Part shown: piece after piece, positions 18,431 through 46,389 of the stretch
How positions within the stretch are numbered: the stretch's first letter is position 1
Layout of the letters: each line of letters begins with the position of its first letter
Source of the DNA: Heterodontus francisci
Lineage: Eukaryota
Length of the DNA stretch: 64,000 nucleotides
Direction of reading: 5' to 3'
Assembly (NCBI RefSeq): GCF_036365525.1
Contig: NW_027140825.1
Coordinates: 1,178,001 to 1,242,000, forward strand
Made by a program: the position numbers and the translations under genes
The notes under the pieces: generated by a model
What the model was told of the DNA's origin: nothing
Database searches by the model: none
The model's input: only the letters and a program-made list of their open reading frames with translations

Positions 18431-18469
18431 CACAGTGCAACTAGAATGCAAGGAAACACGGCAAAAACT
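18431..18469 (+). other. 23-RSS
   Basis: CACAGTG-23-GCAAAAACT. Confidence 0.85.
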
Positions 18470-19030: not shown

Positions 19031-19354
19031 AAAGAATGTTTGCAGATGTCACTAAAATCTGTGCACGGGTTAAGACAGTAGAGGGGTCCTGTGGAATCCA
19101 AAGTGATTTCCCTGTGGCAGGGGATTAGGCCACACAATGGCAACTGGCATTAAATTTAGGCTTATGTTGTGTTATGTACGTTGATGGGGCCAGAAATGAA
19201 TCCAATTGCAGGGAAGATACTGAAAGAGGCCAGCAGAGAATTATTCTGGTCTGATCAGTGAAGGGTGAAGACTGATGTAAAGAGCCTGCAGTTAAAGTTA
19301 ACGGGTTTTTAGATTGTGTTAATGGAATCATCATGAATCAAATGACTAGATTTT

Positions 19355-20790
19355 AGAATAACATGAGAAATCGGAGCAGGAGTAGACCATTCGGCCCGTC
19401 GATCCTGCTCTGTCATTCAATACCATCATGACTGATCCTCTAACTCAACTCCACTTTTCCACCCGCTCCCCATATCCCTTCAGTCCATCAGTGACCACAT
19501 ATCTGTCTATCACAACCTGAAATATATTCAATAATGGAGCATCCACCACCCCCGGGGGTAGAGAATTCCAAAGATTTACCACCCTTTGAGTGAAGAAACC
19601 TCTCCTTATCTCAGTCCCAAATGCTTGGCCCCTTATCCTGAGGCTGCAAGAGATTCCCCAGCCAGGGGAAACAACTTCTCAGTGTCTACCCAGTCAAGCA
19701 CATTCAGAATCTTGTATGTTTCACTGAGATCACCTTTCATTCTTCTAACCTCCATAGAATACAGGCTCTCTCATCATAGGACAAACCTTTCATCCCAGGA
19801 ACCAATGGAGTGACCCTTCGTTGTACTGCCACCAAGGCAAGTGTAGCCTTCCTCGGATATGAAGACCACAACTGTGTACAGTAAAGCAGGTGTGATCTTA
19901 TCAAAGCGCTGGCCAATTGTAACAAGACTTCCTTATTCCTGTACTCCAATCCCACTTGCAGTAAAGGCCAACAGGCCATTTGCCTTGCTAATTTCTTGCT
20001 GCACCTGCATGTGAACTTACTGTGTCTCATGTACGGGGACACCCAAGCCTCTCTGAACATCAACATCGAGAAGATTCACGCCTTGTAAAAAATTATATTC
20101 TTACAACCAAAGTGAACAACCTCATTCTTCCCCACATTATACTCCATCTGCCAATCACTTATTTTGAAATTATGCTGCCTAGTTCTAGATTCGCCCACCA
20201 GGGAGAAACATCCTCTCGGCTTCCAAGCTGTCAATCACCCTTAAATTATTACATGTCTCGGTAAGATCACCTCTCATTCTTCTAAACTCCAGTGGGTATC
20301 GGCTCAAACTGCTCAACATTTCCTCATAAGACAATCCCTTCATCCCAGGTATCAGCCGAGTGAACCTTCTCTGAACTAATTCCAATGCATTTATGTCCTT
20401 TCTTAATTACGTAGACCAATACTTTACTCAGTACTCCAGATGTGGTCTAACTAAGGCCCTGTACAGCTTTAGCAACACTTCCCTACTTTTATATTCTATT
20501 CCCCTTGCAATAAACAACAACATTTCATTTGCCGCCCTAATCACTCGCTGTACCTACATGCTGACTTTTTGTGATTCACGTACCAGGACACGCAGATCCC
20601 TCTGTACTGTCGAGACCTGCAGTCTCTCTCTATTTAAATAATATTCTGAATTCCCATGCTTCCTGCCAAAGTGGGCAAGCTCACATTTGTCCACAGTATG
20701 CTCCATCTGCCATTTTTTGCCCACTTACTTAACCTATCTATAACCCTCTGCAGACTCTTTGTGCCCTCCTCACAATTTGTTTTCCAACCT
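19355..20790 (-). mobile_element. Nested degenerate CR1 LINE 3' fragments
   Basis: VQRRFTRLIPGMKGLSYEE..RRMRGDL; CR1 tail. Confidence 0.75.
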
Positions 20791-21099
20791 ATCTTTCGCA
20801 TGGTCAGCACATTCCTGACCAATCAAAAAATAAGGCAATATTCCATGGAAGGAAAGGTGGGAATGTTGGGAAGGGAAGAGAGAAAGTCGGGCTCAGGGGC
20901 TTGCAGGAATCTGCATAAATAACAGCAATGCTGCTGAGGGAAGTGCTCCTCATTTGTTCACTCTGCTGACAGGCGTGGTCGAGGTACAGGATGGGCGGCC
21001 AATCGTTCCACTCTCTTCATCACAACCGGTGGCATTTCCATTTACCAGGCGCCGGCTTGATGCTCAGTAAGGGCTGCCTCTCTGCTTCTGAGAAGGACA

Positions 21100-21725
21100 A
21101 TGGCAGTCTCAGCTAAAAACATCTCAATCTTGGTCATCTTATTGCTTGGACATTGGATTTTTTGTAAGTGCTATCCCTTCAGCAGGTGGAAGTAGATTCA
21201 ATAGTAATCTCCCAAATGGCTATTGGATCAGGGCTTGGAGCAGGGAAATTGGGAGGGCAATGGGGTAGGAGCAGGGGCAAGTGAGACTAACTCGATAGCT
21301 CATTCAAACAGCCAGCGCAGATACGATGGGCAGAACGGCCTCTTTCTATTCTATTAGATTCTATGATTTATGCTACCATTTTCCTTGCATGATTCTGAAT
21401 CACTTTCTTTTATGGAATGTGTTCCAGGGGTTCAGTCTGCACCTACTGTGGTCCAGACTCCAGCCGCGGCTTCTATTCGACCGGGGAAGCCCCTCGCCCT
21501 CGGCTGCAACTTGGAGGGAGCCAGCATGGGCAGCTACACCATGCACTGGTACAGGCAGGAGGGGAAGGCAGTAGAGTGGATGTGCAATGAGCACGGCAGC
21601 TGTGGGCCAGGCTTTGAGAAGCGGTTCACTGTGCAACAAGACTCTGCAAGCAACCGATTCTCCCTGCAGCTGGGCGACCCCCAGCCGACAGACACTGCGA
21701 CCTACTACTGTGCAGCAAGTGTGGG
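21100..21725 (+). CDS. TRBV: TRBV segment, open, YYCAAS family (leader 21100-21163, V exon 21428-21725)
   Basis: MAVSAKNISILVILLLGHWIF|WVQSAPTVVQTP..LGCNLEGASMGSYTMHWYRQEGKAVEWMCNEHGSCGPGFEKRF..DTATYYCAASV; GT-AG phase-1 intron; Cys23, Trp41 and Cys104 present. Confidence 0.9.
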
Positions 21726-21764
21726 CACGGCGATACAACCCTGCAGCAGAGTGAGACAAAAACG
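21726..21764 (+). other. 23-RSS with variant heptamer
   Basis: CACGGCG-23-ACAAAAACG. Confidence 0.85.
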
Positions 21765-21914
21765 TCCTCACCCTCCCAACCTGCCCCTAAAACACCCACC
21801 TGTGAGCAGCAGCATCTGGAAAGCTCAGCAAACCAACGAGCCCCTGTGTATCTCTATTGGTGACCTTTGCAACACCATGTCATTTGAAAACACTTTACAG
21901 CCAGTTAGCCAAAA

Positions 21915-22425
21915 AGTCATACAGCCAGTATGGTACAGAAGGAGGCCATTCGGCCCATCGAGTCCATGCAATCTAGTCAATTCCATTCCACCTCTCTATC
22001 CCTGCGGTCTAGCAAGATTATCCCCTTCAAGTGTCCATTCAATTTCCTTTTGAAATCATTCATTGTCTCCACTTCCACCACCCTGGTAGGCAGTGAATTC
22101 CCTGTTGTTACCACTCACTGTGTATAGAGGTTCTTCCTCAAATACCCCAGTATCTATTGTCCAGAATCATCAATCTGTGACCAATAGTCCTTGCACCATC
22201 CACTAATGGGAACAGGTTTACTCTGTCTACTTTATCTAACACTGTCACAATCGTGTACATCTCCTATCCGATCTCCCCTCAATCGCCTTTGCTCAAAGGA
22301 AAACCACCCCATATTCTCCAATCTAACCATGTAACATCCCTGGAACCATTCTGGTAAATCTCCTCTGCAGCCTGTCAAGGACACTCATCCTTCCTAAAGT
22401 GTGGTGACCACAACTGGACGGCATA
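21915..22425 (-). mobile_element. CR1 LINE 3' fragment
   Basis: aggaggccattcggcccatcgag tail and RT C-terminal remnants. Confidence 0.7.
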
Positions 22426-22426
22426 C

Positions 22427-23505
22427 TCCCCCTCTCACCATCTCCATCTGCTGGTGACCCTGTCTCACTGCAGTTACTGTCCCCCTCCCACCATCCCCAT
22501 CTGCTGGTGTCCCTCTCTCACTGCAGTCACTGCCCCCCTCTGACCATCTCCATCTGCTGGTGTCCCTCTCTCAATGCAGTCACTGCCCCCCTCTCACCAT
22601 CTCCATCTGCTGGTGACCCTCTCTCACTGCAGTTGCTGTCACCCCTCTGACCATCTCCATCTGCCTCACTGCAGTTACTCCCCCACTCACCATCCCCATC
22701 TGCTGGTGACACTCTCTCACTGCAGTTCCTGTCCCCCTCCCACCATCTCCATCTGCTGGTTTCCCTCTCTCACTGCAGTCACTGCCCCCCTCTGACCATC
22801 TCCATCTGCTGGTGTCCCTCTCTCACTGCAGTCACTGCCCCCCTCTGACCATCTCCATCTGCTGGTGTCCCTCTCTCACTGCAGTCACTGCCCCCCTCTC
22901 ACCATCTCCATCTGCTGGTGACCCTCTCTCACTGCAGTTACTGTCACCCCTCTGACCATCTCCATCTGCCTCACTGCAGTTACTCCCCCTCTCACCATCT
23001 CCATCTGCTGGTGACACTCTCTCACTGCAGTTACTGTCCCCCTCCCACCATCTCCATCTGCTGGTGTCCCTCTCTCACTGCAGTCACTGCCCCCTCTCAC
23101 CATCTCCATCTGCTGGTGACACTCTCTCACTGCAGTTACGGTCCCCCTCCCACCATCTTCATCTGCTGGTGTCCCTCTCTCACTGCAGTTACTGTCCCCC
23201 CTCTGACCACCTCCATCTGCTGGTGACCCTGTCTCACTGCAGTTACTCCCCCTCTCACCATCTCCATCTGCTGGTGTCCCTCTCTCACTGCAGTTACTCC
23301 CCCTCCCACCATCTCCATCTGCTGGTGTCCCTGCCTCACTGCAGTTACTCCCCCTCTCACCATCTCCATCTGCTGGTGTCCCTCTCTCACTGCAGTTACT
23401 GTCCCCCTCCCACCATCTCCATCTACTGGTGGCCCTGTCTCACTGCAGTTACTCCCCCTCTCACCATCTCCATCTGCTGGTGTCTCTATCTCACTGCAGT
23501 TATTG
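22427..23505 (-). repeat. ~50-bp minisatellite, ~19 full plus 2 deleted units, each with a CTCF-like motif on the - strand
   Basis: - strand unit: actgcagtgagagagggacaCCAGCAGATGGAGatggtgagagggg. The repeat is certain; the CTCF role is inferred. Confidence 0.9.
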
Positions 23506-23809
23506 GTCCCTCTCTCGCTGATGATGTTAACTCCTTTTCACTCCCCACAGAGGCTGTCTGATCTGTTAACTATTTCCAAGCTTGTCTATTTATAATTCAG
23601 AAGCTCAGCCAGCAGCAATAAAGTGACACAGCTCCCAGAACCGAAACCATGCATTAACTTCACCAGCATCCAGTCTGTTAAATTATGAAGAAATGTTGCA
23701 TAGACAAGGCTTGCAGTCCCGACATGAGAATATTGACAGGGGAATCTAATGGAGGTGTTTAATTTTTTAAAGGATTTAAGATGGTGAGAGGGAACAGTAA
23801 CTGCAGTGA

Positions 23810-24150
23810 GACAGGGAGCAGGATTAGGCCATTCAGCCCATTGAGCCTGCTCTGCCATTCAATACTATCATGGCTGATCATCCACATCAATGCCTTTTCT
23901 CCAGACTATCCTCATATCCCTTTATGTCATTGGTATTTAGAAATCTGTTAATCTCTGCTTTAAACATACTCAATGACTGAGCTTCCACAGCCCTCTGGGA
24001 TAGAGAATTCCAAAGATTCACAACCCTCTGAGTAAAGAAATTTCTCCTCATCTCAGTCCCAAGTGGCTTCCCCCTTATTTTGAAATTGTGCACCTTGGTT
24101 GTAGACTCCCCAACCAAGGGAAACATCTTACCTGCATCTACCCTGTTGAT
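23810..24150 (-). mobile_element. CR1 LINE 3' end
   Basis: MRRNFFTQRVVNLWNSL..FKAEINRFL. Confidence 0.85.
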
Positions 24151-25165
24151 AAGTCATAGGGAGAGAGAACGGAAAAGATTCACGAGTATGGTTCCAGGGA
24201 TGAGGAATTTCAGTTATTGAAGATCGATTGGAGAAGTCGGAGATAAACCAACCACAAAGAGCAAGAGTGTTCGAGAGCAAGTAACAGAGAGAGAAATAGA
24301 GAAGAGAGAGAGGGGGGATGTGGGGGGGAACGAAATGGAAAGGAAAATAGAGAGACGGAGAGACTACGAGATAATGGGTGATGGAGACAGAGTAAGAAGG
24401 AAAATGAGAAATTAGAGGAAAAGAGGGTGTACAGAAAGTGAGAAAAATGAATGAGAGGTAGAGTGCCCAAGATAAGGAAAGCCTGGGACAGAGAGAAAGA
24501 CAGAAAGCGAGAGAGAGTGAGAGAAAGAGAGATTGTGTGTGTGTGCGAAAGAGATCAAACAGTCGTTTAATTTTAACAAAAGTAACTTTAACCCCAGAAA
24601 AATGAGTGGAGTCACACATACAAACACAGAGTGCAGGTTAATGCCCAGACATGCTTTATTAAAGATTAAAAGTTGCAGAGAGAAATCACTCAGTAATCAC
24701 GGTTGCAACCCATTGGACTCGATACAATGGTCCAAAAATATTATCACTGCCAATCAAACAATTTCATCAGCTCAACAGCGATTAGTGAAATGATCCATAA
24801 ACTGCAGTGTTCAATGATTGGAGGAAGATTACAGAGCATGACTGAGAATATATAGCAATGTGTTTAACACATCTCCCAGATCAATTACAAGATGAATTAT
24901 ATAATCAGTAAATTCACTCCCTACTGTCCGATCAAATCTGACTTCCTAATTGTTGGACTTGACTTCCCTTCACTTTCTCTCTTGGCGTGCTGCCAGCTGC
25001 CACCCATGGACAGAGTGTACACTCCTTCCTCCCCTTCCCCAACACCCTCATGTCTTTATTCATCCACAGTGTCCCATTAGGGAATTAGTGTGCTCTTGGT
25101 TTGAAGTGAAACACAATTTTCCAGCTCAATGTTTGAAATCCTTCTCACTGTTGTTCTGCATCATT

Positions 25166-25760
25166 GTAGGGAGTGACCTGGAGAATGAAGCATTATTATA
25201 GAGAGTGACCTGGACAATGAGGGATTATTATAGGGAGTGATCTGGAGAATGAGGGATTTTTATAGAGAGAGATCTGGAGAATGAGGGATTATTATAGGGA
25301 GTGATCTGGAGAATGAGGGATTATTATCGAGAGTGATCCAGAGAATGAGGGATTATTATAGAGAGTGATCTGGAGAATGAGGGATTATTATAGAGAGTGA
25401 TCTGGAGAATGAGGGATTTTTATAGAGAGTGATCAGGAGAATGAGGGATTATTATAGGGAGTGATCTGGAGAATGTGGGATTTTAATAGAGAGTGATCTG
25501 GAGAATGAGGGATTATTTTAGAGAGTGATCTGGAGAATGAGGGATTATTATAGAGAGTGACCTGGGGAATGAGGGATTATTGTAGAGAGTTGTCTGGGGA
25601 ATGAGGGATTATTATAGAGAGTGATCTGGAGAATGAGGGATTGTTATAGAGAGTGATCTGGGGAATGAGGGATTGTTATAGAGATTGATCTGGAGAATGA
25701 GGGATTGTTATAGAGAGTGATCTGGAGAATGAGGGATTATTATAGAGAGTGATCTGGGGA
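25166..25760. repeat. 32-bp minisatellite (atagagagtgatctggagaatgagggattatt), ~18 copies
   Basis: Directly visible. Confidence 0.95.
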
Positions 25761-25769
25761 AAGCTGCAT

Positions 25770-28700
25770 TATTAGCTGAAAGCTAGGACGGACAGAGTTG
25801 TTATCTCTGGTTTGTTGCCGGCGCCACGTGATAGTGAGGCTAGGAATAGGGAGAGAGCACAGCTGAACACGTGGCTGCAGGAATGGTGTAGGAGGGAGGG
25901 CTTCCAGTTCTTGGATAATTGGACTGCATTCTGGGGAAGATGGGACCTGTTCAAACAGGACGGGCTGCATCTGAACCAGAGGGGCACCAATATCCTGGGA
26001 GGGAGGTTTGCTAGTACTGTTCGGGAGGGTTTAAACTAGTTTGGGAGGGGGATGGGAACCGGACTTGTAGTCCAGGGACCAGTGGGTCCACTCAGAAAGA
26101 CAAAGAGTGTAGTGAGGTATTGGGGAAGGTAGCACTGTCGCAGAGGACAGATGGGCACGGAGAAGGGTTAAAGTGCGTATACTTCAACGCAAGAAGCATC
26201 AGGAATAAGGTGAGTGAATTGAAGGCGTGGATGGGCACTTGGGACTACGATGTTGTGGCCATCACTGAAACGTGGATAGGTGAGGGGGAGGAATGGTTCT
26301 TGGAGGTACCTGGTTATAGATGTTTTCATAAGATTAGGAATGGTGGTAAAAGAGGTGGGGGGGTGGCATTGTTAGTTAGAAATAGTGTAACAACTGCTGA
26401 AAGAATTTTCGAGGAGGATCTGCCGACTGAGGCACTGTGGGTTGAGGTCAGGAACAGGAAAGGAGCAGTCACCTTGATGGGAGTTTTCTATCGGCCCCCC
26501 AATAGCAGCAGGGTGTGGAAGAGCAGATTGGGAAACAGATTTTGGAAAGGAGCAGAAGTCACAGGGTAGTAATTATGGGGGATTTCAACTTCCCAAATAT
26601 TGATTGGCAACTCTTCAGATCGAATAGTTTGGATGGGGTAGTGTTTGTGCAGTATGTCCAGGAAGCTTTTCTGACTCAGTATGTAGACTGCCCGACCAGA
26701 GGGGAGGCAATATTGGATTTGGTACTAGGTAATGAACCAGGGCAAGTGATAGAGCTGTTGGTGGGCGAGCACTTTGGAGATAGTGATCACAATTCTGTAG
26801 CATTCACTGTGGTAATGGAGAGGGATAGGTATGTGCAACAGGGCAAGGTTTACAATTGGGGGAAGGGTAGATATGATGCTGTCAGGCAGGAACTGAGGAG
26901 CATAAGTTGGGAGCATATGCTGGCAGGGAAGGGCACGGTCGAAATGTGGAACTTTTTCAAGGAGCAGATAGTAGGGGCCATTGATAAGCATGTCCCTGTC
27001 AGACAGGGAAGGGATGGTCATGTGAGGGAACCGTGGTTGACAAGAGAGGTTGAGAGTCTTGTTAGGAAGAAGAAGGATGCGTATATAAGGTTGAGGAAAA
27101 AGGGCACAGGCATAGCTCTGGAGGGATACAAGATGGCCAGGAAGGATCTGAAGAAAGGGATTAGGAGAGCTAAGAGAGGGCATGAAAAATGCTTGGCGGG
27201 TAGGATAAAAGAAAACCCCAAGGCCTTTTACGCGTATGTCAGAAATATGAGGATGACTAGGGGGACCGTAGGTCCGGTCAAGGACAATAGCGGGAGACTG
27301 TGTGTTGAGCCGGAAGAGATAAGTGAGGTTTTGAATGAGTACTTCTCTTCGGTATTTACGAATGAGAAGGGGTGTATTACTGAAGAGGACGGTGTGAAAC
27401 AGACTGGTAAGCTCGAGGAAGTGCTCGTTAGGAGGGAAGATGTGTTGGGGTTTTTGAATAACTTGAAGATAGACAAGTCTCCCGGGCCTGACGGGGTATA
27501 TCCAAGGATGTTATGGGAAGCAAGGGATGAAATTGCAGAGCCGCTGGCAATGATCTTTTCATCTTCTCTGTTGACGGGGGTGGTACCAGGTGATTGGAGG
27601 GTGGCAAATGTTGTGCCCCTGTTCAAGAAAGGGAATAGGAACAACCCTGGGAATTACAGGCCAGTTAGTCTTACTTCGGTGGTAGGCAAGTTGATGGAAA
27701 AGGTGCTGAGGGATAGGATTTCTGAGCATCTGGAAAGACACTGCTTGATTCGGGACAGTCAGCACGGTTTTGTGAGGGGTAGGTCTTGCCTCACAAGCCT
27801 GATTGAATTCTTTGAGCAGGTGACCAAGCAAGTGGATGAGGGTAAACCAGTGGATGTGGTGTACATGGATTTTAGTAAGGCATTTGATAAGGTCCCCCAT
27901 GGTAGACTTATGGAGAAAGTCAGGAGGCATGGGATAGTGGGGAATGTGGCCAGTTAGATTAAGAATTGGCTAACTGATAGAAGGCAGAGAGTGGTCTTAG
28001 ATGGTAAATACTCAGCCTGGAGCCCAGTTACCAGTGGCGTGCCACAGGGATCAGTTCTGGGTCCTCTCCTGTTTGTGATTTTTATTAACGACTTGGATGA
28101 GGAAGTCGAAGGGTGGGTCAGTAAATTTGCAGATGATACAAAGGTTGGTGGAGTTGTGGATACCGAGGAGGGCTATTGTCGTCTGCAAAGGGACTTGGAT
28201 AGGTTGCAGTGCTGGGCTGAAAAGTGGCAGATGGAGTTTAACCCTGAAAAGTGTGAGGTCGTCCATTTTGGAAGGACAAACACGAATGCAAAATACTGGG
28301 TTAACGGTAGGGTTCTTGGGCATGTGGAGGAGCAGAGAGACCTTGGGGTCTATGTGCATAGATCGTTGAAAGTTGCAACTCAAGTGGATAGGGCTGTGAA
28401 GAAGGCATATGGGGTGTTAGCGTTCATTAGCAGAGGGATTGAATTTAAGAGCCGTGAGGTGATGATGCAGCTGTACAGGACCTTGGTAAGGCCTCATTTG
28501 GAGTACTGTGTGCAGTTCTGGTCGCCTCATTTTAGGAAGGATGTGGAAGCCTTGGAGAGGGTGCAGAGGAGATTTACCAGGATGTTGCCTGGAATGGAGA
28601 ATAAGTCTTACGAGGAAAGGCTGAACATTCTAGGCCTCTTCTCATTAGAACGGAGAAGGATGAGGGGTGACATGATAGAGGTTTATAAGATGATCAGGGG

Positions 28701-29030
28701 AATAGATAGGGTAGACAGTCAGAAACTTTTTCCCCGGGTGGAGCAAAGCGTTACAAGGGGTCATAAATTTAAGGTGAAGGGTGGGAGATATAAGGGGGAT
28801 GTCAGGGGAAGGTTCTTTACCCAGAGAGTGGTCGGGGCATGGAATGCCTTGCCTGGGGAAGTTGTTGAGTCAGAAACTTTAGGGACTTTCAAACGGCTTT
28901 TAGATAGGTATATGGATAAAGGAGAATGATGGGGTATAGATTAAATTGTCCTTGACAGAGGACAAAGGATCGGCACAACATCGTGGGCCGAAGGGCCTGT
29001 TCTGTGCTGTATTTTCTATGTATGTTCTAT
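25770..29030 (+). mobile_element. CR1 LINE, 5'-truncated in ORF1; ORF2 (APE endonuclease + RT) near complete with one frameshift (~26515) and one TAG (27955)
   Basis: ORF1 SGNH-esterase end (DGLHLN), YFNARS, ITETW, GDFN, SDH, NYRPVSLTS, YMDFSKAFD, VPQGSVLGP, KFADDTK; tail ttctatgtatgttctat. Confidence 0.95.
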
Positions 29031-29139
29031 ATTAACAGAATAAAATGGAAGTAGATAGATTTCTAGAGTAATAGAATGATTTGCACTGTTTTCCTGGGAC
29101 TCTCTGATCTGCTATTGCCTCCTGTAGTGAGACTGTTTA

Positions 29140-31182
29140 CTAGATACAGTAGCCCCCAGGGTGGGTGCAGTCCTGACACTGTATTTGGCTGTTGGTCCCA
29201 TCACACTTTCTGATGTGAAAGCCTGCCTGGGTAACTTGTCCCAGCTTGTTTCGAACTGTGGGGATCTTATTTCTATTATTGTCGTATCGGTACAATGTAC
29301 TGAAGACAAAATACTTCTGAACCTGCGGGCCAGCCCATGGGTGGCTAAAGGGTGCCTGGCCTAACGCGGCGAGGATGTCACAATTCTCATTGCCACTGAA
29401 GCAGCTCTGGATGCAGGGGGTGTAGGTGGTGTAGAGAATGACACAGCCAACCTGCAGCCCCTGGTTATTGATGCTATTCTGAAGCAGCCGAGCTGCACTG
29501 TCAGTCTGCCCATAGCGTTGATCCTCCTGAGTGAAGTGTAACAGTTTATTCTCTGAGCAGCGACTTCCTGTGTTGGGGTAAACTGCGATGTAGTTTACTG
29601 ATCGACTGTTCAGGAAGTAATTCACACCGCCACGAATAACCGGTCTTCCTGTATCAGAGGGTCTGAATTGTACATTCTGATTGATATTGGCACCGGTGCA
29701 TTGTTGAGGAGTTAACACCATCAGGAAGGCGAACTGTCCTCCCCCAGTCGTACTGCTGGGCTGGTGGCCAGACACTTGTCGGAATCTGAAAGGGACAAAC
29801 ACAAAGTGAGAGTCAAGGTAGGAATTGTGAATGAAATTCTCCTTGTGCCAGGTCAGTATGATGTGGATTATGGTCACCTGCCTATTTAATACCATACCTC
29901 ATGATGGAAGGAGGGAAACTGGGAGTTTGAGTCAGAGAGTCAAAGAGTTACACAGCACAGAAACAGGCCCTTCGGCCCATCGTGTCTGTGCCAGCCATCA
30001 AGCACCTAACTATTCTAATCCTATTTCCCAGCACTTGGCCCGTAGTCTTGTATGCTGTGGCATTTCAATAAATTTGGTCATTAATTTACGACATTGGAAA
30101 GGACGGGACCGAATGAACTCATTCCAATGAAACAGAGATGGAAAGAGGGATGGGAACAAGAGCAAGGGAGAAACAAAGAGGTGGAGAGATGGATGGAGGG
30201 AGGGAGACAGAGAATGTGATAGAGGGAGGGTAGAAGACAGCAGGAGAGACAGAGATGGAGAGAAGAAACAAAGCGAGGGAAAGGAAGAGTTCTGGAGACA
30301 AGTACATAGAAACAGATAGAGACAGAAAAAGGAAGAACAAGATGGAGACAGATACAGATAGAGACAGAGAGAGGGAACAGAGGCAGTGATAAACTGAAAA
30401 AGGATAAAGTAATAGAGACAGAGATGAGAGAGATAGACAGGCCGTCGAGCATGGAGAGGGACAAGTGACAGGAGAAATACAGTGAGAGATTAACAGCAAC
30501 ACAAACCAAGAGATAAATAGAATGGAAGACATAGAGAGAGAAAGAGATAGACACAGGGCAACAGGGAGAGAGAGCGAGAGGGGGAGAGGAGCGAGGTCAG
30601 TGAGCGAGGTCAGTGAGCGGGGTCAGTGAGTGGGGTCAGTGAGTGGGGTCAGTGAGAGGGGTCAGTGAGTGGGGTCAGTGAGTGGGGTCAGTGAGAGGGG
30701 TCAGTGAGAGGGGTCAGTGAGAGGGGTCAGTGGGTGGGGTCAGTGAGTGGGGTCAGTGAGTGGGGGCAGTGAGTGGGGTCAGTGAGTGCGGTATGTAAGT
30801 GGGGTCAGTGAGTGGGGTCAGTGAGTGGGGTCAGTGAGCGGGGTCAGTGAGTGGGGTCAGTGAGTCAGATTATTGATGAAGTGACATGTCTCACTCTGAG
30901 TCCTTTCTCGCTCACCTTCCCCTCTCTGTAGTTCCATGTTATTTTAATTTAACTGGACTCTGCCCTGTTCCCCCTCATCACTTTGACAGAGCGGAGACTC
31001 ATGCCAGGAGAGTAGACCTGGGCCATTCTCACAGCCTAACCCTGTCAGTGAATGGTGAAAGGCCTGGGCAGGATGAACACTTACTGTGAGACAATTCCAG
31101 CCAAGACATTGTCATTTAGTGCAGCCGCATCTGACTCGGGGACCCAGAACAGCACCAACAGGAACAAGCAGAGAGTCCGCAT
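29140..31182 (-). CDS. Secreted novel AID/APOBEC-like deaminase (SNAD family, SNAD1-like), 247 aa; coding exons 31182-31085 and 29785-29140
   Basis: Signal-peptide exon MRTLCLFLLVLFWVPESDAAALNDNVLAGIVS (gtaagt donor, phase 2) joins in phase to the tttcag acceptor. Product has GQFAF..C, CSE(N)KLL (HxE position), LYTTYTPCIQSC (PCxxxC), FVFSTLY and a Cys-rich tail RKC..CQDC..YC*. An acceptor at 31211-31212 implies an upstream non-coding exon. Confidence 0.85.
30590..30868. repeat. 13-bp tandem repeat (ggtcagtgagtgg), ~21 copies, in the deaminase intron
   Basis: Directly visible. Confidence 0.95.
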
Positions 31183-31660
31183 CGTGGGATCTTCCTGCCC
31201 ACTCCAAATCCTGAAAGAGGGAACAAAGGGAGGAGGTCATCAATGGGACAGAATTTCTAATCGAAGACCCAGTCAGTGTGAGAGAGACAGAGCGAGAGAG
31301 AGAGAGGGTGACAAAGATAGAGAGCGATAGATAGAGAGCAACTGAGAGAGACGGAGAGAGAGATAGATAGAGAGCAAGTGATAGAAATTTAGAGAGACAG
31401 ACAGAGAGAGAGAGAAAGATAAAGAGCAAGTGAGAAAGACAGAGAGAGAGAGACGGAGAGAGAGCAAGAGAGACAGAGAGCAAGTGATATAAACTTAGAG
31501 AAAGACAGAGAGAGAGAGAGTGACAAAGATAGAGAGAGAAAGATAGAAAGATAGAGGGAGAGAGAGGCAAAGAGAGAGAGATAGCAAGCGCGACAGAGAC
31601 AGAGAAAGACATCGACAGACAGAAAGAGAGCGACAGAGAGCGACAGAGAGAGAGCAAGTG

Positions 31661-31697
<37 letters not shown>

Positions 31698-31934
31698 CGG
31701 ACAGAGAGAAAGATGGATAGAGCAAGAGACGGAAAGAGAGAGAGAGAGGAAGAGAGAGAGACAGACAAAAGTGACAGTGACCGATTCTTTCCAGAGCTGC
31801 CTTTTTAAGATAAATGTTTATTACCTCCCGCCTCTGCTGGGAAAGAGGGATTTTCTACACTGTAGTGACCGGCAATGACTACTTCACACCTTCTTTATTT
31901 CTGTAGAACCCATTCAATTCTGGAATGTTTTATA

Positions 31935-32595
31935 GAGATAGGGAGAGTTGCAGGGCCTGGAAGAGGTTACCAAGGTAGGGAGTGTTGAAGTTGCTGGAGG
32001 ATATACAGAGATAGGGAGAGTTGCAGTTGCTGGAGGAGGTTACAGAGAGAGTGATGGTTGTCGGGGCTGGAGGAGGTTACAGAGATAGGGTGGGATGTAG
32101 CGGTTGGAGGGGATTACAGAGAGAGTGATGGTTGTAGGCACTGGAGGGGGTTACAGAGATAGGGTGGGTTGCAGGGGCTGGAGGCGATTACAGAGAGAGT
32201 GATGGTTGCAGGGACTGGAGGAGGTTACAGAGATAGGGTGGGATGTAGGGGCTGGAGGCGATTACAGAGAGAGTGATGGTTGTAGGCACTGGAGGAGGTT
32301 ACAGAGATACGGTGGGATGCAGGGGCTGGAGGCGATGACAGAGAGAGTGATGGTTGTCGGCACTGGAGGAGGTTACAGAGATAGGGAGGGTTGTAGGGAC
32401 TGGAGGAGGTTACAGAGATAGGGAGGGTTGTAGGGACTGGAGAAGGTTACAGAGATAGGGAGGATTGTAGGGGCTGGAGGAGGTTCCAGAGACAGGAAAG
32501 CTTGTCGGCGCTAGAGGAGATTACAGAGGCAGGAAGGGTTGCAGGGGCTGGAGGAAGTTACAGAGAATGGGAGGATTGAAGGGGCTGGAGGAGAT
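31935..32595. repeat. ~36-bp minisatellite (ggggctggaggaggttacagagatagggagggttgta)
   Basis: Reverse complement of the 6505-7160 family. Confidence 0.9.
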
Positions 32596-32644
32596 TGCTG
32601 CACAGTTAGTACAGAGGCAGCGATTCTCTGTCAAAGAGTCGAAA

Positions 32645-33325
32645 CTGAGGGAGTGCCGCACTGTCGGAGGGTCAGTAATGAGGGAGTGCCGCACTGTCGG
32701 AGGGTCAGTACTGAGGGAGTGCCGCACTGTCGGAGGGTCAGTACTGATGGAATGCTGCACTGTCAGAGGGTCAGTACTGAGGGAGTGCGGCACTGTCGGA
32801 GGGTCAGTACTGAGGCAGCGCCGCACTGTCGGAGGGTCAGTACTGAGGGAGCACCACACTACCAAAGGGTCAGTACTGAGGGAGTGCTGCACTGTCGGAG
32901 GGTCAGTACTGAGGCAGCGCCGCACTTTTGGAGGGTCAGTACTGAGGGAGCGCCTCACTGTCGGAGGGTCAGGGCTGAGGCAATGCCGCACCATTGGAAG
33001 GTCAGTACTGAGGGAGCACTGCGCTGTTGGAGGTTCAGTACTGAGGGAGAGCCGCACTGTTGGAGGGTCAGTACTGGGGGAGTGCTGCACTGTTGGAGGG
33101 TCAGTACTGAGGGAGTGCTGCACTATTGGAGGGTCAGTACTGAGGGAGTGCTGCACTGTTGGAGGGTCAGTACTGAGGGAGTGCTGCACTGTTGGAGGGT
33201 CAGTACTGAGGGAGTGCCTCACTTTTGGAGGGTCAGTACTGAGGGAGTGCTGCACTGTTGGAGGGTCAGTACTGAGGGAGTGCTGCACTTTCGGATGGTC
33301 AGTACTGAGAGAGTGCTGCTCCATG
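32645..33325. repeat. 33-bp minisatellite (gagggagtgctgcactgtcggagggtcagtact), resembling the Deu-SINE core
   Basis: ~20 tandem units; a related unit occurs in the introns at 50695-50900, 53120-53290 and 55328-55535. Confidence 0.9.
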
Positions 33326-36300
33326 CCAGGGTTACCCGCATCCCAAGAATACATTTTACTATTCTCTACATGTCCTTATACAATGTCATCTACGATCAGC
33401 TGGCACCATGAAATATTTCACCCATTTTCTCTGTGATTATAATTTATACTTTACCTTCGATCAGTCTCTGCTGCTTCGAACACCAACAGTTGGCAGTCCA
33501 ATGTTCACAATGTACGTCTGACAGGATGACAAACACACTGTGATTTAAGTTCAACTCCTGTTGAATTAACCGCTGCCAAAATAAACCTGAGCAGATCCAC
33601 CAGACGCTTTCTAAGTCACAAGTGGGCTGTGATGAAAAGGGGTCAAGGATCTACCACAATTCTGGGAAACTCTGACTAAACCCCATGTGGAGTTAACACA
33701 TTCAGTTCTGCACACCAAAGCTCAGAAAGCATCGTCCTTGGAGGGGTTGCTGTTTAGGTTCACTACAATGATACCTGAGCAGAAGTAGTTCAATGATCAG
33801 GACATTTTGGAGAAACTAGACTGGCATTCCCTTCAGTATAAAACAATAAAGTGTCATCTAATTTATTTCAGCAGATATGGAGAAACTATTGGCTCTCGTG
33901 CCGTTTACAGATCATATAAGGTTAAGCTCAACATTTGAGCACGGCCATTCAGCAATGATGTCAGGAATGGCTCTGTCACTGAACCCCCTCACTGTCCATA
34001 CACAGAGCAGAGGGAGGAGTGTGAGAAGGAGGGGGAATGGAAAGGCGGAGGGTAGTAGAGAAAGGGAGAACAGGATGGGCAGGGGAACACAGAATCCATT
34101 AAATAGCTGCAGGAGCAGGCCATTCAGCCCCTCGAGCCTGCTTCACCATTCAATAGGATCACAGCTACTCCTCAACCTCGACTCTACCTTCTTACCCAAT
34201 CCTCATATCCCTGGATTCTCTCTGAATCCAAAAATCTATCAATCTCGGTCTTCACTTTCCTCAACGAGTGAGCATCCACAGTTCTCATTGGTAGAGAATT
34301 CCAAAGATTCACAACCCACTGAGTGAAGACATTTCTACTCATCTCATTCCCAAATGGCCAACCCCTTATCCTGAAATTGTGACTCTCTATCCCAGGGGAA
34401 AGGTACTCTTAGCATCCACCACACCCTAACAATTGTCTATGTTTCAAAGAGATATCCTCGCATTGTTTTAAACTATGGGGAACATAAACCCAGACCTCTC
34501 AACCACTGCTCATAAAATAATCCCGAAATCCCAGGAATCATCCGAGTGAACCTTCATTGAACTCACTCAAATGTATGTATAGCATTCCTCAAATAAGGAG
34601 ACCAAAACTGTACACAGTACTCCCGGAACCTGTACAACTGCAGTGTGGGAAGAATGATGCTCCGATAGTGAAGCTCTCCCTCAGCACTGCTTCCCGAGAG
34701 TACATCACCCTCTCCTTACTGCACCTCCGATGGTGCTGTAATCTCCCAGTAGGGCCCCGCTCCAGTTTAATATAGCGCCCCTTTATTTTTTCTTTAGCTG
34801 GGGTTCGTTGCTGCAACCAGCAGGCAGCACCTCCAATCAAGCAACAACCAACCCCGCTTTCTCTTCTTTTTTTATGGGAACAGCGGAGAGGGAGCTTTAT
34901 TCTGTATCTAACTCCGTTTGTTTTTAAAGGAAGCCTTTATACCCCAGGCCCCTTTTATATATTATTTGTCGAGGGGGCCTTTATTCTCCAGGCCCCCTTA
35001 GAGTGCCCCTCACAACACAGTGTTCATTCAGTATTGTCTCTCCGAGAGTGATGTGTCTCTATGTATGGCCCCTGAACAGTTAACAAGGCCTGAGTTAATT
35101 GGTGACAGCAAACAAGAAGGGGTAAAAGGGTCAATTGTATTTTGCTGACAGCACTGAGGTTTTATTTACCTGGTGTCTGATTGGTTCAATGAGAGGCGTT
35201 TACATGTGGTGCAAATAAACTTTGGAAAGTCGTTGGAAAAGTGCCAACATATTAAAGTGAAGCGCTCCCTCAGTACAGATACACAAAAACAGACACAAAC
35301 ATGCAGATATACACACACACAGAGACACACCAACAAACATGCAGACAATATCTCAGAGGGGTGTTGGGCTGGAGGTGGTTCAGAGCCAGTGAAGGCCGAA
35401 GCCAATGAGGGATTTGAGTCTGAGGTTGAGAAATCTACACCCGAGCCAGCAGTGGACTGGGAGCTGCAGGGTGACCGTTTTTTGGGACAATAAGAGACGC
35501 TTAGAATAAAACTCAGAAACAAAATGTAGAGACACTGGCGAAGATGCAAGGAATGCCCTCCTTCTGTATTGGAAAGCTTTCTATCTTTCTATTAATGATT
35601 AACAAGGATGATACTGGAACTGAAAGGTTGTAATTATCAGAAGAGAATATCAGTAAAAAGATACAGGTTTTAACCACTATCAGAGTGTCTTCTTTCCCTG
35701 GGATGAGGAAAATGTTTATCAGGAACACAATAAACAGGAGGAGGCCATTCAGCCCCTCTGGATCCAACACACCCACACATTTCTCCTATCCTCCATACAA
35801 ATGTTCCCTGCACCCTCCCATCGAGGTAAAGCTGAAACGAGCTGTCCGTTTTCGAATGTGGGGAGGCGGGGGTGTGGGGGGGTGGAGGGTGGGGTCTTGT
35901 TTTTACATATAGTGAGGGGGGAAAGGATGTAGGAGGGAACTGCAGGACGACATTCCTAAGAAAAGACAGGTTACAGTGACAGTGAGAGATTAGAGATATA
36001 GGCACTGGAGAAAGGGGCAAAGGACGATTAATCACGATGTCACCAGAACTGAGATTCACTGCAACTATTCACTATCAGGAAGCAATGACAATAAGCTGGG
36101 TTTTTATGCACTGAACCTGTGTTTACCTTCTCCACAGGGACAGCAGAGGAAGTGGGACCGGAGGGCTGTAGGACCATGTAACAGACAATGGCTTTGAGAA
36201 GGATTTAGTGAGAAAACTGAAAGAGCAGGAGACCACGCCGATCCAGCTTGATACACATCAACAGGACAAGGACACCCACTTAATTAGAGTGAGAAAGAGA

Positions 36301-36777
36301 GTGTGTGTGTGTGACAGAGAGAGAGATGTAGTGAGAGAGTGGAAAGAGAGAGGAAAAATGACAGACAGAGTTAAAGAGACTGAGACAGAAAGGTAGACAG
36401 AGATAGAGGCAAAGACAGCGAGACAGCAAGAGACACATAATTACAGAGAGAGAGAGAGAGAGAGTGGGACACTGAGGAGAGACTGAGACAAAGAGACTGA
36501 GATAGATAGGGAGACAGTGCTCGAGAGAGAGAGATGGAGTGATAGAGAAAGAGAGTGAAGGTAGACTGAGAGACAAAGAGAGAGAGAGAAAGACATTGGC
36601 AACAAATTTGATTGTGATTTGTTGACCTGGGGAATGGGCGTCTCCAACATTCTATCACTTCCTAATGCTCTTCATGTTCCTCCCAATGATTTGCAAAGAG
36701 TGAATTTGGACCCTCACAAGACTTTAACCTCCTGCTCTCACTCCTGTGTTTAGTAAGAGAACAAGTTGTAGTGAAAG

Positions 36778-37229
36778 ATGTATCAGTTACTGGGTCTGAT
36801 AATCCTGTTTCATTGTAAGTGAGTGTGAAATACAAAGATATCGTTAATAACTTTCCTTTCCTCTCTCTGTCTCCCTTTCATTCCAAGAAGTTCCCTATTT
36901 AATGATCTCCTCCTCTCTCCATCTCTCTCCCAGATGTGAACTCACAGACAATCCACCAGATTCGTGCCGCTGTCTCCAGATTGCGTGGAGAAGCAGTGGA
37001 ACTGAGGTGCACCGTGCAGGGCACCAGTACTGATAGAATGTGCTGGTACAGACAATACCTGGGGAAGGAGCCGCTGTTGATGTTTTATTCCAATACTGCT
37101 AACTATGTGGATCCAGAGGGGACGGTGGACGGTTTCACCGCCGGGAGACCGAGGAATTCCGAGTTCAACCAGGAGTCCTCCAGCCTGTGGGAGAATCACT
37201 CGGTCGTGTATTTCTGTGCCTGGAGAGAT
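36778..37229 (+). CDS. TRBV: TRBV segment, family A, open frame but weak RSS (leader 36778-36814, V exon 36934-37229)
   Basis: MYQLLGLIILFH|YVNSQTIHQ..LRCTV..MCWYRQYLGKEP..VYFCAWRD; framework Leu replaced by Gln (FNQES). Confidence 0.85.
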
Positions 37230-37268
37230 CACAGTGACTCAGAGAGATGGAGCAGTTCATCGAAGACA
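37230..37268 (+). other. 23-RSS, degenerate nonamer
   Basis: CACAGTG-23-TCGAAGACA. Confidence 0.75.
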
Positions 37269-38016
37269 CCAAAGGCAGCAGGAAGAATCTGTGGAGGATA
37301 AAACTGCTCGGAGCCTCGAACTTGTTTCGTTTTGCAGAGCGAAAGTGTTTATGATAACACGAAGAGATGGGTTAGAGTGGGAGTGAGAGATTAGATATAC
37401 AGATAGTGGAGAATGTGTAAAGAACAATTAACAAGGATAACACCAGATCTGAGGTTGTAACTATCAGGAAGAATTAACTATAAAACGACTTGAGTTTTAC
37501 TGCACTGACACTGAGTTTTCTTCCTCTATATGATTAACAGAGGGTGCTCTCGGACCATGAATATGCAATGGTCTGTAAAACATTTAATAGGAAAACAGAA
37601 AGAGGCAGAGGTCATACAACCCTCAAGCTTCATACACATGGACAGGAGAAGGACATTCATCACATTAGAGAGGGATATACACACACACAGTGAGAGAGAC
37701 AAAGAGAGGGAGACCGAATGTGTGAGAGAGGGAGAGAACAAGATTGAGAGGAAAACTGACAGAGACAGAGAGACAGAGACAGAGAGAGAAAAGAGAGAAG
37801 AGGACAGAGAGGAGGACAGAAAGGAGGACAGAGGGTGACATAGAGGAGGTCAGAGAGGGTGGCAGAGAGGAGGAGGGAGACGAGGATCAAGAAAGGTCGA
37901 GAGAGCGACAGAGAAAACAAGAAAGACCGAGAGACCGAGTGAGAGAAAAAAAAGGAAACATGGATCAAGAGACTGAGACAGATTGGGAGAAAGACAGACA
38001 GACAGACAGACAGACA

Positions 38017-38056
<40 letters not shown>

Positions 38057-38792
38057 GAGAGGGACAGAAAGACAGAGAGCAGTAAAACAGACAGGGACAG
38101 TGAACTAAAGACAGAGCGAGTGAAAAACACACACACACACACATGCACAGCTTTGTATCCGTGCCCATTCATCTTCCAGCTCATTGAATCAGAATATCCC
38201 GTGATCTCAGGATAGTAACTGTCAGGAAAGAATAACAATAAAAGGACTGGGGCTGTTATAGACTGACACTGTGTATATGTTCACCACAGGGACAGCTGAG
38301 GACGCTCGAGGACCATGTGATGCACAATGGCATTGAGAAGGAGTTCATAGGAAAACTGAAACAGTGAGAGATCATACAGTCCTCCAGGTTGATATGCATG
38401 ACCAGGAGAAGGACACCCACCTCCTTCGAGAGAGAGACACACAGCGAGAGAGACAAAGAGAGAAAGGGACCTTGTGTGTTTGTATCTGTGAGAGAGAGAT
38501 CGAGATAAAGAGACTGAGACATACAGGGAGGCAGAGAATGAGAGACAGAGACAGAGAGAAAAACACAGCACAAGTTAGAGAAAGGGAGAGAGAGAGAGAG
38601 AAAGTGGAACATTGACAACCAACTCGATTCTCATTTGTTGATCTTGAAAATAAGTGTCACCATCTCTGCATCACTTCCTAATGCTCTCCCCGTTCCTCCC
38701 AATGATTTGTAAAGAGTGGGTTGGTTCTTGACAACACTCATGAATCCTGCTTTCTCCCCTTTGCTGATTCAGAGGGCAGCTTAAAGTAAAAG

Positions 38793-39273
38793 ATGTATCT
38801 GTTACTGACTCTGATCACCCTGTTTCACCGTAAGGGATTTTATTGAAACAATAAGTCCACTTAACATTTCTTTTGGTTATGCTTTTATTTATTTATCTCT
38901 CTCTTTCTCTCTCCCCACTGGACTGAATGTTACTGTTTACTGATCTCCTCCTCTCCCTGTCTCTTTCCCAGATGTGAACTCACAGACTATCCGCCAGACT
39001 CCCACCACTGTCTCCAAAATTCCTGGGGAGCAGGTGAAGCTGAAATGCACCGTGCTGGGCAGCAGCACCAGTAACCCTAACATGTTCTGGTACTGACAAT
39101 ACCCGGGGAAGGAACCGCAGTTTATGTTTTACTCCACGGGTGCCAATATCGTATCTCCAGAGGAGGCGGTGGATGGTTTCACCACCGAGAGACCGAGTAA
39201 CTCCGAGTTCAACCTGGAGACCTCCAGCCTGCGGGAGGATCACTCGGCCGTGTATTTCTGTGCCTGGATTCTT
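38793..39273 (+). pseudogene. TRBV: TRBV pseudogene, family A (leader 38793-38829, V exon 38972-39273)
   Basis: Single in-frame TGA at 39094-39096 in WY*Q; ends YFCAWIL. Confidence 0.9.
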
Positions 39274-39312
39274 CACAGTGACTCAGAGAGATGGAGCAGT
39301 TCAACAAAAACC
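39274..39312 (+). other. 23-RSS, perfect consensus
   Basis: CACAGTG-23-ACAAAAACC. Confidence 0.95.
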
Positions 39313-39839
39313 CCAAAGGCAGCAGGAAACACCTGTGGGAGATAAAATTGCACGGTGTTCCCGCTTTTTTTTTGTGCAGGGCGATTGTGTTTGTGACGAT
39401 AAGAAGACAAATGAGACTAAAAGTGAGATAATAAATGTACAGGCACTGACGAAGTGACAATGAACGGACTCACCTGTGCGGTAAAACTTTCTATCTCTCT
39501 CTGAATGATTAACAAGGATAACACCAGATCTGAGGTTGTAACGATCAGGAAAGATTAACAATAAAACGACTTGAGTTTTTCTGCACTGACATTGAGTTTT
39601 CCTCCTCTATAGGGTTAACAGAGGGTGCTCTAGGACCATGAATACACAATGGACGAGAAAGCATTTAATAGGAAAGCAGAAAGAGGCAGAGGTCATACAG
39701 TGGTCGAGCTTCATCCACGTGGACAGGAGAAAGACATTCATCACCTTAGAGACGGATATACACACAGATAGCGGGAGAGACAAAGATAGAGAGAGAGCGA
39801 GTGTGAGAGAAAGGGTGAGAACGAGATTGAGAGGAAAAC

Positions 39840-41743
39840 TGACAGAGATAAAGAGACTGAGACAGAGAGACTGAGAGTGAGAGAGACTGAGAGATAGAGA
39901 CTCAGAGGGAGAGAGTGTCTGACAGAGAGAGAGACAGAGAGAGAGAGAGAGACTGAGACAGAGAGACAGAGAGAGAGACTGAGAGTGAGAGACTGAGACA
40001 GAGAGAGACTGAAACAGAGAGACCGAGAGAGAGAGACTGAGAGCGAGAGAGACTGAGAGATAGAGACTGAGAGGGAGTGAGAGTCTGACTGAGAGACAGA
40101 GAGAGACAGAGAGAGAGAGAGACTGAGAGTGAGAGACTGACACAAAGAGACTGAGAGAGAGAGAGGCTGAGAGAGAGAGACTGAGACTGAGACAGAGAGA
40201 GACTGAGACAGAGAGACTGAGAGAGAGAGACTGAGACAGAGAGAGACTGAGACAGAGACTGAGAGAGAGAGACTGAGAGAGAGAGAGACTGAGAGGGAGA
40301 GAGTGTCTGACAGAGAGAGAGACAGAGAGAGAGACTGAGACTGAGACAGAGAGACTGAGACAAAGAGACTGAGAGTGAGAGACTGAGACAGAGAGAGACT
40401 GAAACAGAGAGACCGAGAGAGAGAGACTGAGAGCGAGAGAGACTGAGAGATAGAGACTGAGAGGGAGTGAGAGTCTGACTGAGAGACAGAGAGAGACAGA
40501 GAGAGAGAGAGACTGAGAGTGAGAGACTGACACAAAGAGACTGAGAGAGAGAGAGGCTGAGAGAGAGAGACTGAGACTGAGACAGAGAGAGACTGAGACA
40601 GAGAGACTGAGAGAGAGAGACTGAGACAGAGAGAGACTGAGACAGAGAGACTGAGAGAGAGAGACTGAGAGAGAGAGAGACTGAGAGAGAGAGGCTGAGA
40701 GAGAGAGAGACTGAGACAAAGAGCATGACAAAGAGAATGAGACAAAGAGACTGAGAGAGAGATACTGAGAGAGAGAGACTGAGACAAAGAGACTGAGAAA
40801 AAGAAACTGTGCAAGAGAGCCTGGGACAAAGAGACTGAGACAGAGAGTCTGAGAGAAGGAGAATGGGAGACTGAAAGAGAGAGACTGAGACAGAGACTCT
40901 GAGAAAAGGAGAGAGGGAGACTGAAAGAGAGAGACTGAGACAGAGAGGCTGAGAGAGAGAGAGACTGAGACAAAGAGTCAGAGATGGAGAGGCTGACATA
41001 AAGAGATTGAGACAGAGAGATTGAGACGAAGAGACTGTGAGATAGAGACTGAGAGAGAGACTTGAGAGAGAGAGAGAGAGAGACTGAGACAAAGAGACTG
41101 AGAAAAAGAAACTGTGCAAGAGAGCCTGGGACAAAGAGACTGAGACAGAGAGTCTGAGAGAAGGAGAATGGGAGACTGAAAGAGAGAGACTGAGACAGAG
41201 ACTCTGAGAAAAGGAGAGAGGGAGACTGAAAGAGAGAGACTGAGTCAGAGAGACTGAGTGAGAGAGAGACTGAGACAAAGAGTCAGAGATGGAGAGTCTG
41301 ACACAAAGAGATTGAGACAGAGAGATTGAGACGAAGAGACTGTGAGAGAGAGACTGAGAGAGAGACTGAGAGAGAGACTTGAGAGAGAGAGAGAGAGACT
41401 GAGAGAGACTGAGACAAAGAGACTGAGAGAGAGATACTGAGAGAGAGAGAGGGAGACTGAGACAAAAAGACTGAGTCAAAGAGACTGTGAGAGAGAGACT
41501 ATGAGAGAGAGACTGAGACAGAGACTCTGAGACAGAGAGACTCAGACAAAGAGACTGAGACAGAGAGTCTGAGAGAGGGAGAGTCTGCGAGAGGGAGACT
41601 GAGAGAGAGATAATGAGAGAGAGAGAGAGACTGAGAGAGAGACTGAGACAAAGAGACTGAGACAGAGAGACTGAGAAAGAGAGAGACTGAAACAAAGAGT
41701 CAGAGACAGAGAGGTTGACACAAAGAGATTGAGAGAGAGAGAT
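39840..41743. repeat. (GA)n/(GAGACT)n compound microsatellite running into the assembly gap
   Basis: Directly visible. Confidence 0.95.

Positions 41744-46355: not shown

Positions 46356-46389
<34 letters not shown>

Follow-up and report, generated by a model that had tools for sequence, protein, structure and literature searches.

A transcribed gene for a probably secreted SNAD1 deaminase, a probable passenger among T-cell-receptor-beta-like V segments of the horn shark

Introduction

SNADs, a branch of secreted AID/APOBEC-like deaminases, were defined in 2018 in a survey without cartilaginous fish, and a four-cysteine cluster, with its cysteines at the end of strand 5, as CxxC in strand 6 and in strand 7, together with a hairpin has been described for SNAD1 and SNAD2 (PMC5889660). 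Mass spectrometry of nurse-shark plasma revealed two SNAD1 orthologues in 2022 (PMC9207270), and carp SNAD1, also recognized as secreted by mass spectrometry, occurs in blood and seminal plasma, with the liver as its main expression site (PMC11004436). Here we describe a horn-shark SNAD1 gene on a 64,000-nucleotide stretch of Heterodontus francisci DNA (contig NW_027140825.1, positions 1,178,001 to 1,242,000 of the forward strand), referred to below as the window, whose own numbering is used throughout. The gene lies antisense within an array of V segments that resemble those of the T-cell receptor (TCR) beta chain, and a preliminary description of the window, made from its sequence, had proposed both the gene and a link between its location and its regulation in T cells. 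Neither the SNAD1 family nor its occurrence in sharks is a new finding; only the genomic address is. Literature searches turned up neither an account of a shark TRB locus nor any report that connects SNAD to a TCR locus, and an address inside a TRBV array is previously undescribed and so far anecdotal.

Results

Gene structure and transcription

The deaminase gene is encoded on the minus strand in two coding exons. Exon 1 (31182–31085, 98 nt) opens with an ATG and closes ...TCACA, followed by a GTAAGT donor, and exon 2 (29785–29140, 646 nt) has TGTCCCTTTCAG directly before it and ends in a TAG stop at 29142–29140. The combined 744 nt give 247 codons plus the stop, and the codon split by the intron is CAA (Gln). 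We compared the translations exon by exon with NCBI model XP_067882232.1 (P0024), a 247-aa horn-shark entry named "uncharacterized protein" whose residue 33 is Gln, and find both to be identical to it. The two-exon gene with an in-phase splice and a 247-aa product, as first proposed, is thus confirmed by the sequence, by this identity and by the splice junction in contigs of two sequencing runs. The accompanying suggestion that the gene itself is poorly known was overstated, since this very protein is among NCBI's models and a publication on shark SNAD1 exists. The window holds a single copy of the gene.

Contigs from four sequencing runs, X1 to X4, whose type was taken as RNA by guess, were aligned to 29000–31300. 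Those of run X2 cover 29000–29846 and 31079–31232, with none on 31233–31300, and three of them, together with one contig of X4 (a run from another study and another organism), carry a joint from 29785 to 31085 that skips 1299 nt, where CT..AC on the plus strand is GT..AG on the gene strand. A loose end of X2 at 29785 reads the final bases of exon 1, and within the intron contigs fall only on an interspersed repeat at ~29924–30077, which all four runs hold. Run X2 behaves as RNA, because genomic DNA sequenced from this animal would leave contigs on the intron and the 5' flank as well, and the predicted splice is therefore observed. Runs X1 and X3, which share their sample with X2, have no contig on either exon, and such contigs cannot prove absence; contig depth was not used for ranking expression.

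The X4 contigs are 90–95% alike to the gene and share its splice junction, carry an in-frame 3-nt deletion at 29153, close to the C-terminus, and have a linker at the start of exon 2 (29747–29785) that is about eight codons shorter and resembles that of paralogue P0002. Judged by these differences, the X4 contigs are attributable to a paralogue or an orthologue.

At its 5' end, a pyrimidine tract and CAG at 31220–31211 lie upstream of the ATG-bearing exon, contig coverage has its boundary there, and the model of P0002 is longer, reading through 31218–31177. These features suggest that exon 1 starts at 31210 and that a further, non-coding exon lies upstream; a search for that exon with paralogue N-termini returned low-complexity noise only. 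At the other end, the 3' untranslated region (UTR) extends below 29140 and beyond 29000, as contigs run past this position, and no canonical AATAAA or ATTAAA is present within 740 nt below the stop codon.

The intron also contains a 13-nt tandem array at 30595–30865. Its interspersed repeat at ~29924–30077 stands at high summed depth in all four runs, with many contigs continuing into unrelated sequence; because contigs of all four runs often run on in this way, the piece belongs to a widely transcribed repeat family. An opposite-orientation copy is found at ~28975–29015, in or near the 3'UTR.

Family membership, active site and predicted fold

Exon 2 (29143–29784, minus strand) was searched and folded separately. 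Its score on the Pfam SNAD1 profile (PF18744) is 58.3 bits, where the gathering cut-off is 25, with an E-value of 1.4e-15 that excludes a chance match, and residues 11–207 align to profile positions 14–200 of 213, while the SNAD2 profile yields no more than 14.6 bits. Across the full library, HMMER picked up just 20 cluster representatives, and comparing the exon-2 sequence with PDB chains produced chance matches only (E above 1). All motifs on which the gene had first been recognized (QFA, C/HxE, YTxxxPCxxxC, FVF and a Cys-rich tail) are present, and read in the protein as QFAFLM, C-S-E, YTTYTPCIQSC, YFVFS and a tail of C..CxxC..C.

The zinc site is formed by C76-S-E78 and P123-C124-x3-C128 (exon-2 numbering). 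In a 22-sequence alignment of relatives that reaches from sharks to bowfin, Glu78 is invariant (22/22), Cys occupies the first zinc-ligand position in 20 of the 22, His and Ser in one each, and P-C-x3-C is kept in 21/22; C194, C203, C206 and C213 of the tail are invariant or at least 90% conserved. By this alignment CxE is the usual first zinc motif in this branch. We rejected the idea that CxE is an unusual or inactive variant, as it is the norm in 20 of 22 relatives.

An AlphaFold (AF2) model of the exon-2 domain is confident, with a predicted local distance difference test score of 87.5 and a predicted template modelling score of 0.87. A strand at residues 19–24, helices at 26–30 and 55–58 and a strand at 65–68 place a helical insert between core strands 1 and 2 of the model, and a helix at 174–186 is followed by strands at 190–197 and 200–205, a hairpin that replaces helices 5 and 6. 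The fold comparison that had been proposed as a check returned APOBEC3/AID matches: the listed top Foldseek matches (ranks 1–49) are all APOBEC3/AID, with E-values of 1.3e-3 and higher and probabilities of 0.84–1.0, and so are the top 50 from VIA-align, with Z of 7.6–8.4 and a root-mean-square deviation of ~4.3 Å over ~144 residues. The model thus supports a deaminase fold for the exon-2 domain. Because the Pfam score exceeds the cut-off and the fold matches and motifs agree with it, the placement in the SNAD branch that had been suggested from motifs holds, and the gene is a SNAD1 member of the AID/APOBEC-like superfamily, intact and expressed.

Signal peptide and proposed path of the protein

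By inspection, the N-terminus has a typical signal-peptide layout of n, h and c regions (M-R, LCLFLLVLFWV and PESDA), as originally described. Its hydrophobic core is 11 residues long, with a mean Kyte–Doolittle value of up to 3.5 and small residues S-D-A at −3/−1, and full-length relatives share the hydrophobic N-terminus. From these sequence features, and by analogy with relatives, the protein is very probably secreted. A role as a nuclear mutator of TCR genes was rejected, since its signal peptide and its wealth of likely disulfides are marks of a secretory-pathway protein. The earlier preference for an extracellular effector over a nuclear mutator therefore stands as regards the secretory-pathway signs; its enzymatic side is more tentative.

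In the mechanism that we propose, the signal peptide would be cleaved near ...ESDA, and a mature, disulfide-stabilised protein of ~228 aa would be exported. Its most likely destination would be blood plasma and its source a non-lymphoid tissue such as liver, by analogy with nurse-shark and carp SNAD1. The mature protein would then act as a zinc-dependent cytidine deaminase on single-stranded pathogen nucleic acid, outside cells or in the vesicular pathway, and for this enzymatic part we consider the chances roughly even. Deamination of pathogen nucleic acid is the family-level hypothesis of Krishnan et al.

Paralogues and relatives

Named relatives come from the sharks Pristiophorus, Stegostoma, Mustelus, Heptranchias and Scyliorhinus and from bowfin, making six shark genera with Heterodontus; they include LOC132205978 of Stegostoma tigrinum, LOC119958453 of Scyliorhinus canicula, LOC144485193 and LOC144489058 of Mustelus asterias and XP_067834216.1 of Heptranchias perlo. 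Within the horn shark, five accessions of a 90%-identity cluster represent four distinct 247-aa proteins, whose contigs measure 1.67, 1.57 and 1.11 Mb, and P0002 (86% identical) and P0003 (71%, two accessions) bring the total to at least eight SNAD1 gene models. Besides XP_067882232.1, the horn-shark copies are XP_067882234.1, XP_067881642.1, XP_067881645.1, XP_067884560.1, XP_067884565.1, XP_067881413.1 and XP_067881601.1. Pairs of models with neighbouring accession numbers share a contig. Some of these copies could be haplotigs; the set is a lineage-specific expansion typical of SNADs, so that sharks, like teleosts and turtles, carry such an expansion of SNAD1.

Seventeen of the 31 differences between the protein and P0002 fall in a 34-residue stretch, exon-2 residues 139–172 (~29269–29370), which corresponds to strand 4 and the following loop. 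The same region sets target preference in APOBEC3 enzymes. This clustering is suggestive of diversifying selection, as far as a sequence comparison of this kind can indicate it.

The surrounding V array

The array (Table 1) has its heptamers at 9161, 12808, 14362, 18431, 21726, 37230, 39274, 42572, 47658, 51343, 53732, 55978, 59214 and 63820, and about half of its V segments are open, the remainder carrying stops. Array V exons give V-set Pfam matches, and when the V genes at 36936 and 51057, the latter from the family at 51–56 kb, are compared with PDB structures by single domain, TCR beta chains rank first. We therefore describe the array as TCR-beta-like (TRB), an assignment made from V similarity, with D, J and C segments outside the window.

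Positions 21100 and 36778, noted at the outset, are indeed the leader ATGs of plus-strand V genes that flank the deaminase gene, each with a recombination signal sequence with a 23-nt spacer (23-RSS). In the right V gene this signal, at 37230–37268, reads CACAGTG-23-TCGAAGACA, with a weak nonamer; in the left one, at 21726–21764, it reads CACGGCG-23-ACAAAAACG, with a degenerate heptamer. The best PDB matches of the left V are immunoglobulin (Ig) heavy-chain V (VH) and nanobody domains, at E ~1e-20 per domain and far above TCR V, and with this likeness and its CACGGCG heptamer it fails as a TRBV. It could be an Ig-like V of the shark TCR delta kind, stranded in or recruited to the array. The placement of the gene antisense within a TCR V array is thus upheld for the members whose best matches are TCR beta, and fails for the VH-like left neighbour. 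Homologue searches with the two flanking V exons returned no candidates, a blank that means little.

The deaminase gene, opposite in orientation to the V genes, occupies a ~15-kb interval free of V segments. The left RSS is ~7.4 kb away and the right leader 5.6 kb, with satellites (22.4–23.5, 25.2–25.8 and 31.9–33.3 kb) and a degraded long interspersed nuclear element (LINE) between. The gene lies outside every V cassette repeat unit in the window. The sole assembly gap, 41744–41919 (176 N), falls inside a long CT/GA-rich satellite at 39.6–41.9 kb. There is no N in 1–41743, so that unbroken sequence links the deaminase gene to the V genes at 21.1, 36.8 and 39 kb; checked for misassembly at the sequence level, the region shows no gap between the flanking V genes and the deaminase gene.

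Several duplications and insertions mark the rest of the array. A TRBV cassette of ~2.3 kb is present in three tandem plus-strand copies at 50084–56100 (90–98% identity; RSS at 51343, 53732 and 55978), in which the V exons are open, end in YFCACSI and are each preceded by a 33-nt tandem array, and another related V gene pair lies at 58.4–59.4 and 63.0–64.0 kb. On the left, a cassette of ~5.5 kb with two V pseudogenes and satellites is duplicated (8098–13378 versus 13012–18998, 84–90% identity). A LINE open reading frame (ORF), ORF2, at 42870–45569 on the minus strand encodes 899 aa with endonuclease and reverse-transcriptase domains and without a stop, between V segments. It was possibly active recently, with the degraded element at 26120–28929 (plus strand) as a relative.

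Table 1. Features of the horn-shark SNAD1 gene and of the V array around it, in window coordinates
Feature	Position	Strand	Details
V segment array with 23-RSS	8800..63860	+	14 V-linked 23-RSS; cassettes internally duplicated
Left flanking V gene	21100..21764	+	Leader ATG 21100, V exon ~21427-21725, open frame
Degraded LINE (endonuclease and reverse transcriptase over three ORFs)	26120..28929	+	Ends ~200 nt from the deaminase stop, convergent
Second coding exon	29140..29785	-	Complete SNAD1 deaminase domain (214 aa) and stop TAG
Four-cysteine C-terminal cluster C194, C203-x-x-C206, C213, on beta-hairpin	29146..29205	-	Alignment and model strands
P-C-I-Q-S-C, predicted second and third zinc ligands Cys124, Cys128	29401..29418	-	22-sequence alignment
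C-S-E, predicted first zinc ligand Cys76 and catalytic Glu78 (exon-2 numbering)	29551..29559	-	22-sequence alignment
Intron, 1299 nt, GT..AG	29786..31084	-	Contig joint 29785 to 31085
First coding exon	31085..31210	-	5'UTR part 31210-31183, ATG 31182, signal peptide, start of conserved N-terminal helix
Right flanking V gene	36778..37268	+	Leader ATG 36778, V exon ~36935-37229, open frame, ...YFCAWR

Discussion

We consider it probable that this locus is a gene for a secreted SNAD1 deaminase that sits as a passenger in a TCR-beta-type V array, where its position would reflect a repeat-rich, duplication-prone region and involve no functional coupling to TCR rearrangement. Several points weigh against this. 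The runs were labelled RNA by guess, and the contigs of X1 and X3 cannot show absence; the X2 transcripts are not assignable to this copy alone, because near-identical paralogues exist; and a liver origin of the transcript would be an analogy, the tissue of X2 being coded. The fold scores of the model are middling (TM scores of 0.3–0.38, Z ~8), though uniform, and SNAD function was still called unknown in July 2026, with no enzymatic assay for any SNAD (PMC13402138). In Atlantic salmon, SNAD1 (LOC106611397; ssa09, 44.0 Mb) and TRB1/TRB2 share chromosome 9, with TRBV6 at 47.9 Mb, the coordinates being from different assemblies. Finally, if other shark SNAD1 genes also lie among TRBV segments, to call this gene a mere passenger would be too dismissive.

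The last two points lead to the reading that SNAD1 is a long-standing resident of the elasmobranch (or older) TRB V region, co-amplified with the V cassettes, with linkage conserved. We think this unlikely, yet plausible enough to keep in view: at least two SNAD1 models with neighbouring accessions occur per scaffold on several scaffolds, the V cassettes in the window are segmentally duplicated, and the salmon genes share a chromosome at nominally nearby coordinates, albeit in different assemblies. Set against this, the SNAD region is single-copy in the 64-kb window and outside the V cassette repeats, and the proposed synteny check failed in two bony fish, with SNAD1 on chromosome 15 and TRB on 17 in zebrafish, and SNAD1 on chromosome 17 and TRB on 19 and 25 in trout. 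The salmon linkage is ambiguous, and a linkage of SNAD1 with TRB is not general. Slightly less credible still is the fuller version, in which SNAD1 would be a conserved elasmobranch TRBV-region resident amplified with V cassettes, possibly in an ancient gnathostome neighbourhood, at which salmon chromosome 9 hints; if true, an antigen-receptor locus would have carried an AID/APOBEC-superfamily gene within it from the time of the early jawed vertebrates.

A different doubt concerns the enzyme. The protein may be secreted and yet non-enzymatic, binding nucleic acid or another ligand on a deaminase scaffold that is merely kept, as no SNAD activity is published, the first zinc ligand is Cys rather than the His of AID/APOBEC, and an extracellular milieu is odd for a deaminase of single-stranded DNA or RNA. 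We regard this as improbable. The invariance of Glu78, with all three zinc ligands retained in 20–21 of 22 relatives, argues for selection on catalysis, and many active deaminases, for example cytidine and dCMP deaminases, normally have Cys-x-Glu as their first motif.

Very little speaks for the proposal that the gene is functionally tied to its address, through co-regulation with TRBV chromatin in T cells and a dosage that depends on the V used by each clonotype, and we judge it very unlikely. The geometry is right, as first argued: plus-strand V genes with 3' RSS stand on both sides and place D-J-C to the right, so that a deletional joint made by a V left of 29 kb would take the gene off that allele, and a transcript in one of three same-sample runs makes tissue-restricted expression probable. 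For T-cell expression, however, there is no evidence, and nothing supports chromatin co-regulation: elsewhere SNAD1 proteins occur in plasma and are expressed in liver, zebrafish and trout lack the linkage, and the gene is antisense to V genes that are 7.4 and 5.6 kb away, behind satellites and a LINE. Nor is a meaningful clonotype-dependent dosage supported: the V genes to its left in the window are pseudogenes or have a degenerate heptamer, and any passenger in a V region is trivially deleted in some T cells, without consequence. Given that SNAD1 elsewhere is a plasma and liver protein, such deletion would matter little here, as for mammalian trypsinogen genes.

That misassembly of an unplaced, repeat-rich scaffold put the gene among V segments deserves hardly any credence: its record is a 1.67-Mb contig and not of chromosome size, two more contigs of ~1.1–1.6 Mb carry near-identical copies and could be haplotigs, and the surroundings are rich in satellites, but no N occurs in 1–41743 across the V genes and the deaminase gene, and the sole gap lies beyond them.

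For a passenger SNAD1 gene, then, the outcome is an RNA-supported gene model and a family assignment in the horn shark. Its address is a curiosity unless it is conserved across sharks, in which case it would bear on the association of deaminase genes with antigen-receptor loci. The finding does not advance knowledge of the role of secreted AID/APOBEC-like deaminases, although the abundant shark transcript would be a handy source for a first enzymatic assay.

Compared with the SNAD1 family as described (PF18744, PMC5889660), the horn-shark protein shares the signal peptide, the zinc site with its Glu, the C[VI]xxC spacing of the second motif, the C-terminal beta-hairpin with C..CxxC..C, and lineage-specific expansion; its first ligand is Cys, as in most relatives, whereas the carp paper gives HxE. 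The nurse-shark plasma proteins are elasmobranch orthologues whose detection in plasma directly supports their own secretion, in another species and from transcriptome and proteome only, with no genomic location (PMC9207270). Carp SNAD1/Cap31 and zebrafish SNAD1 are likewise encoded by multi-copy genes of two to three exons and secreted to blood or seminal plasma, but these genes are not TRB-linked (in zebrafish, chromosome 15 versus 17) and have low sequence identity to the shark protein (PMC11004436, PMC13402138). AID and APOBEC3 are similar at the level of the predicted fold (Z ~8, every top match) and in active-site architecture, and differ in having no signal peptide, an HxE first motif and helices 5 and 6 instead of the hairpin, in being intracellular, and in an identity of only ~12%.

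For the address, the nearest parallel is the mammalian trypsinogen (PRSS) genes of the TRB locus, which have non-lymphoid expression and are deleted on some rearranged T-cell alleles without known consequence. They belong to another protein family, and share with horn-shark SNAD1 the position of unrelated secreted-protein genes among TRBV segments.

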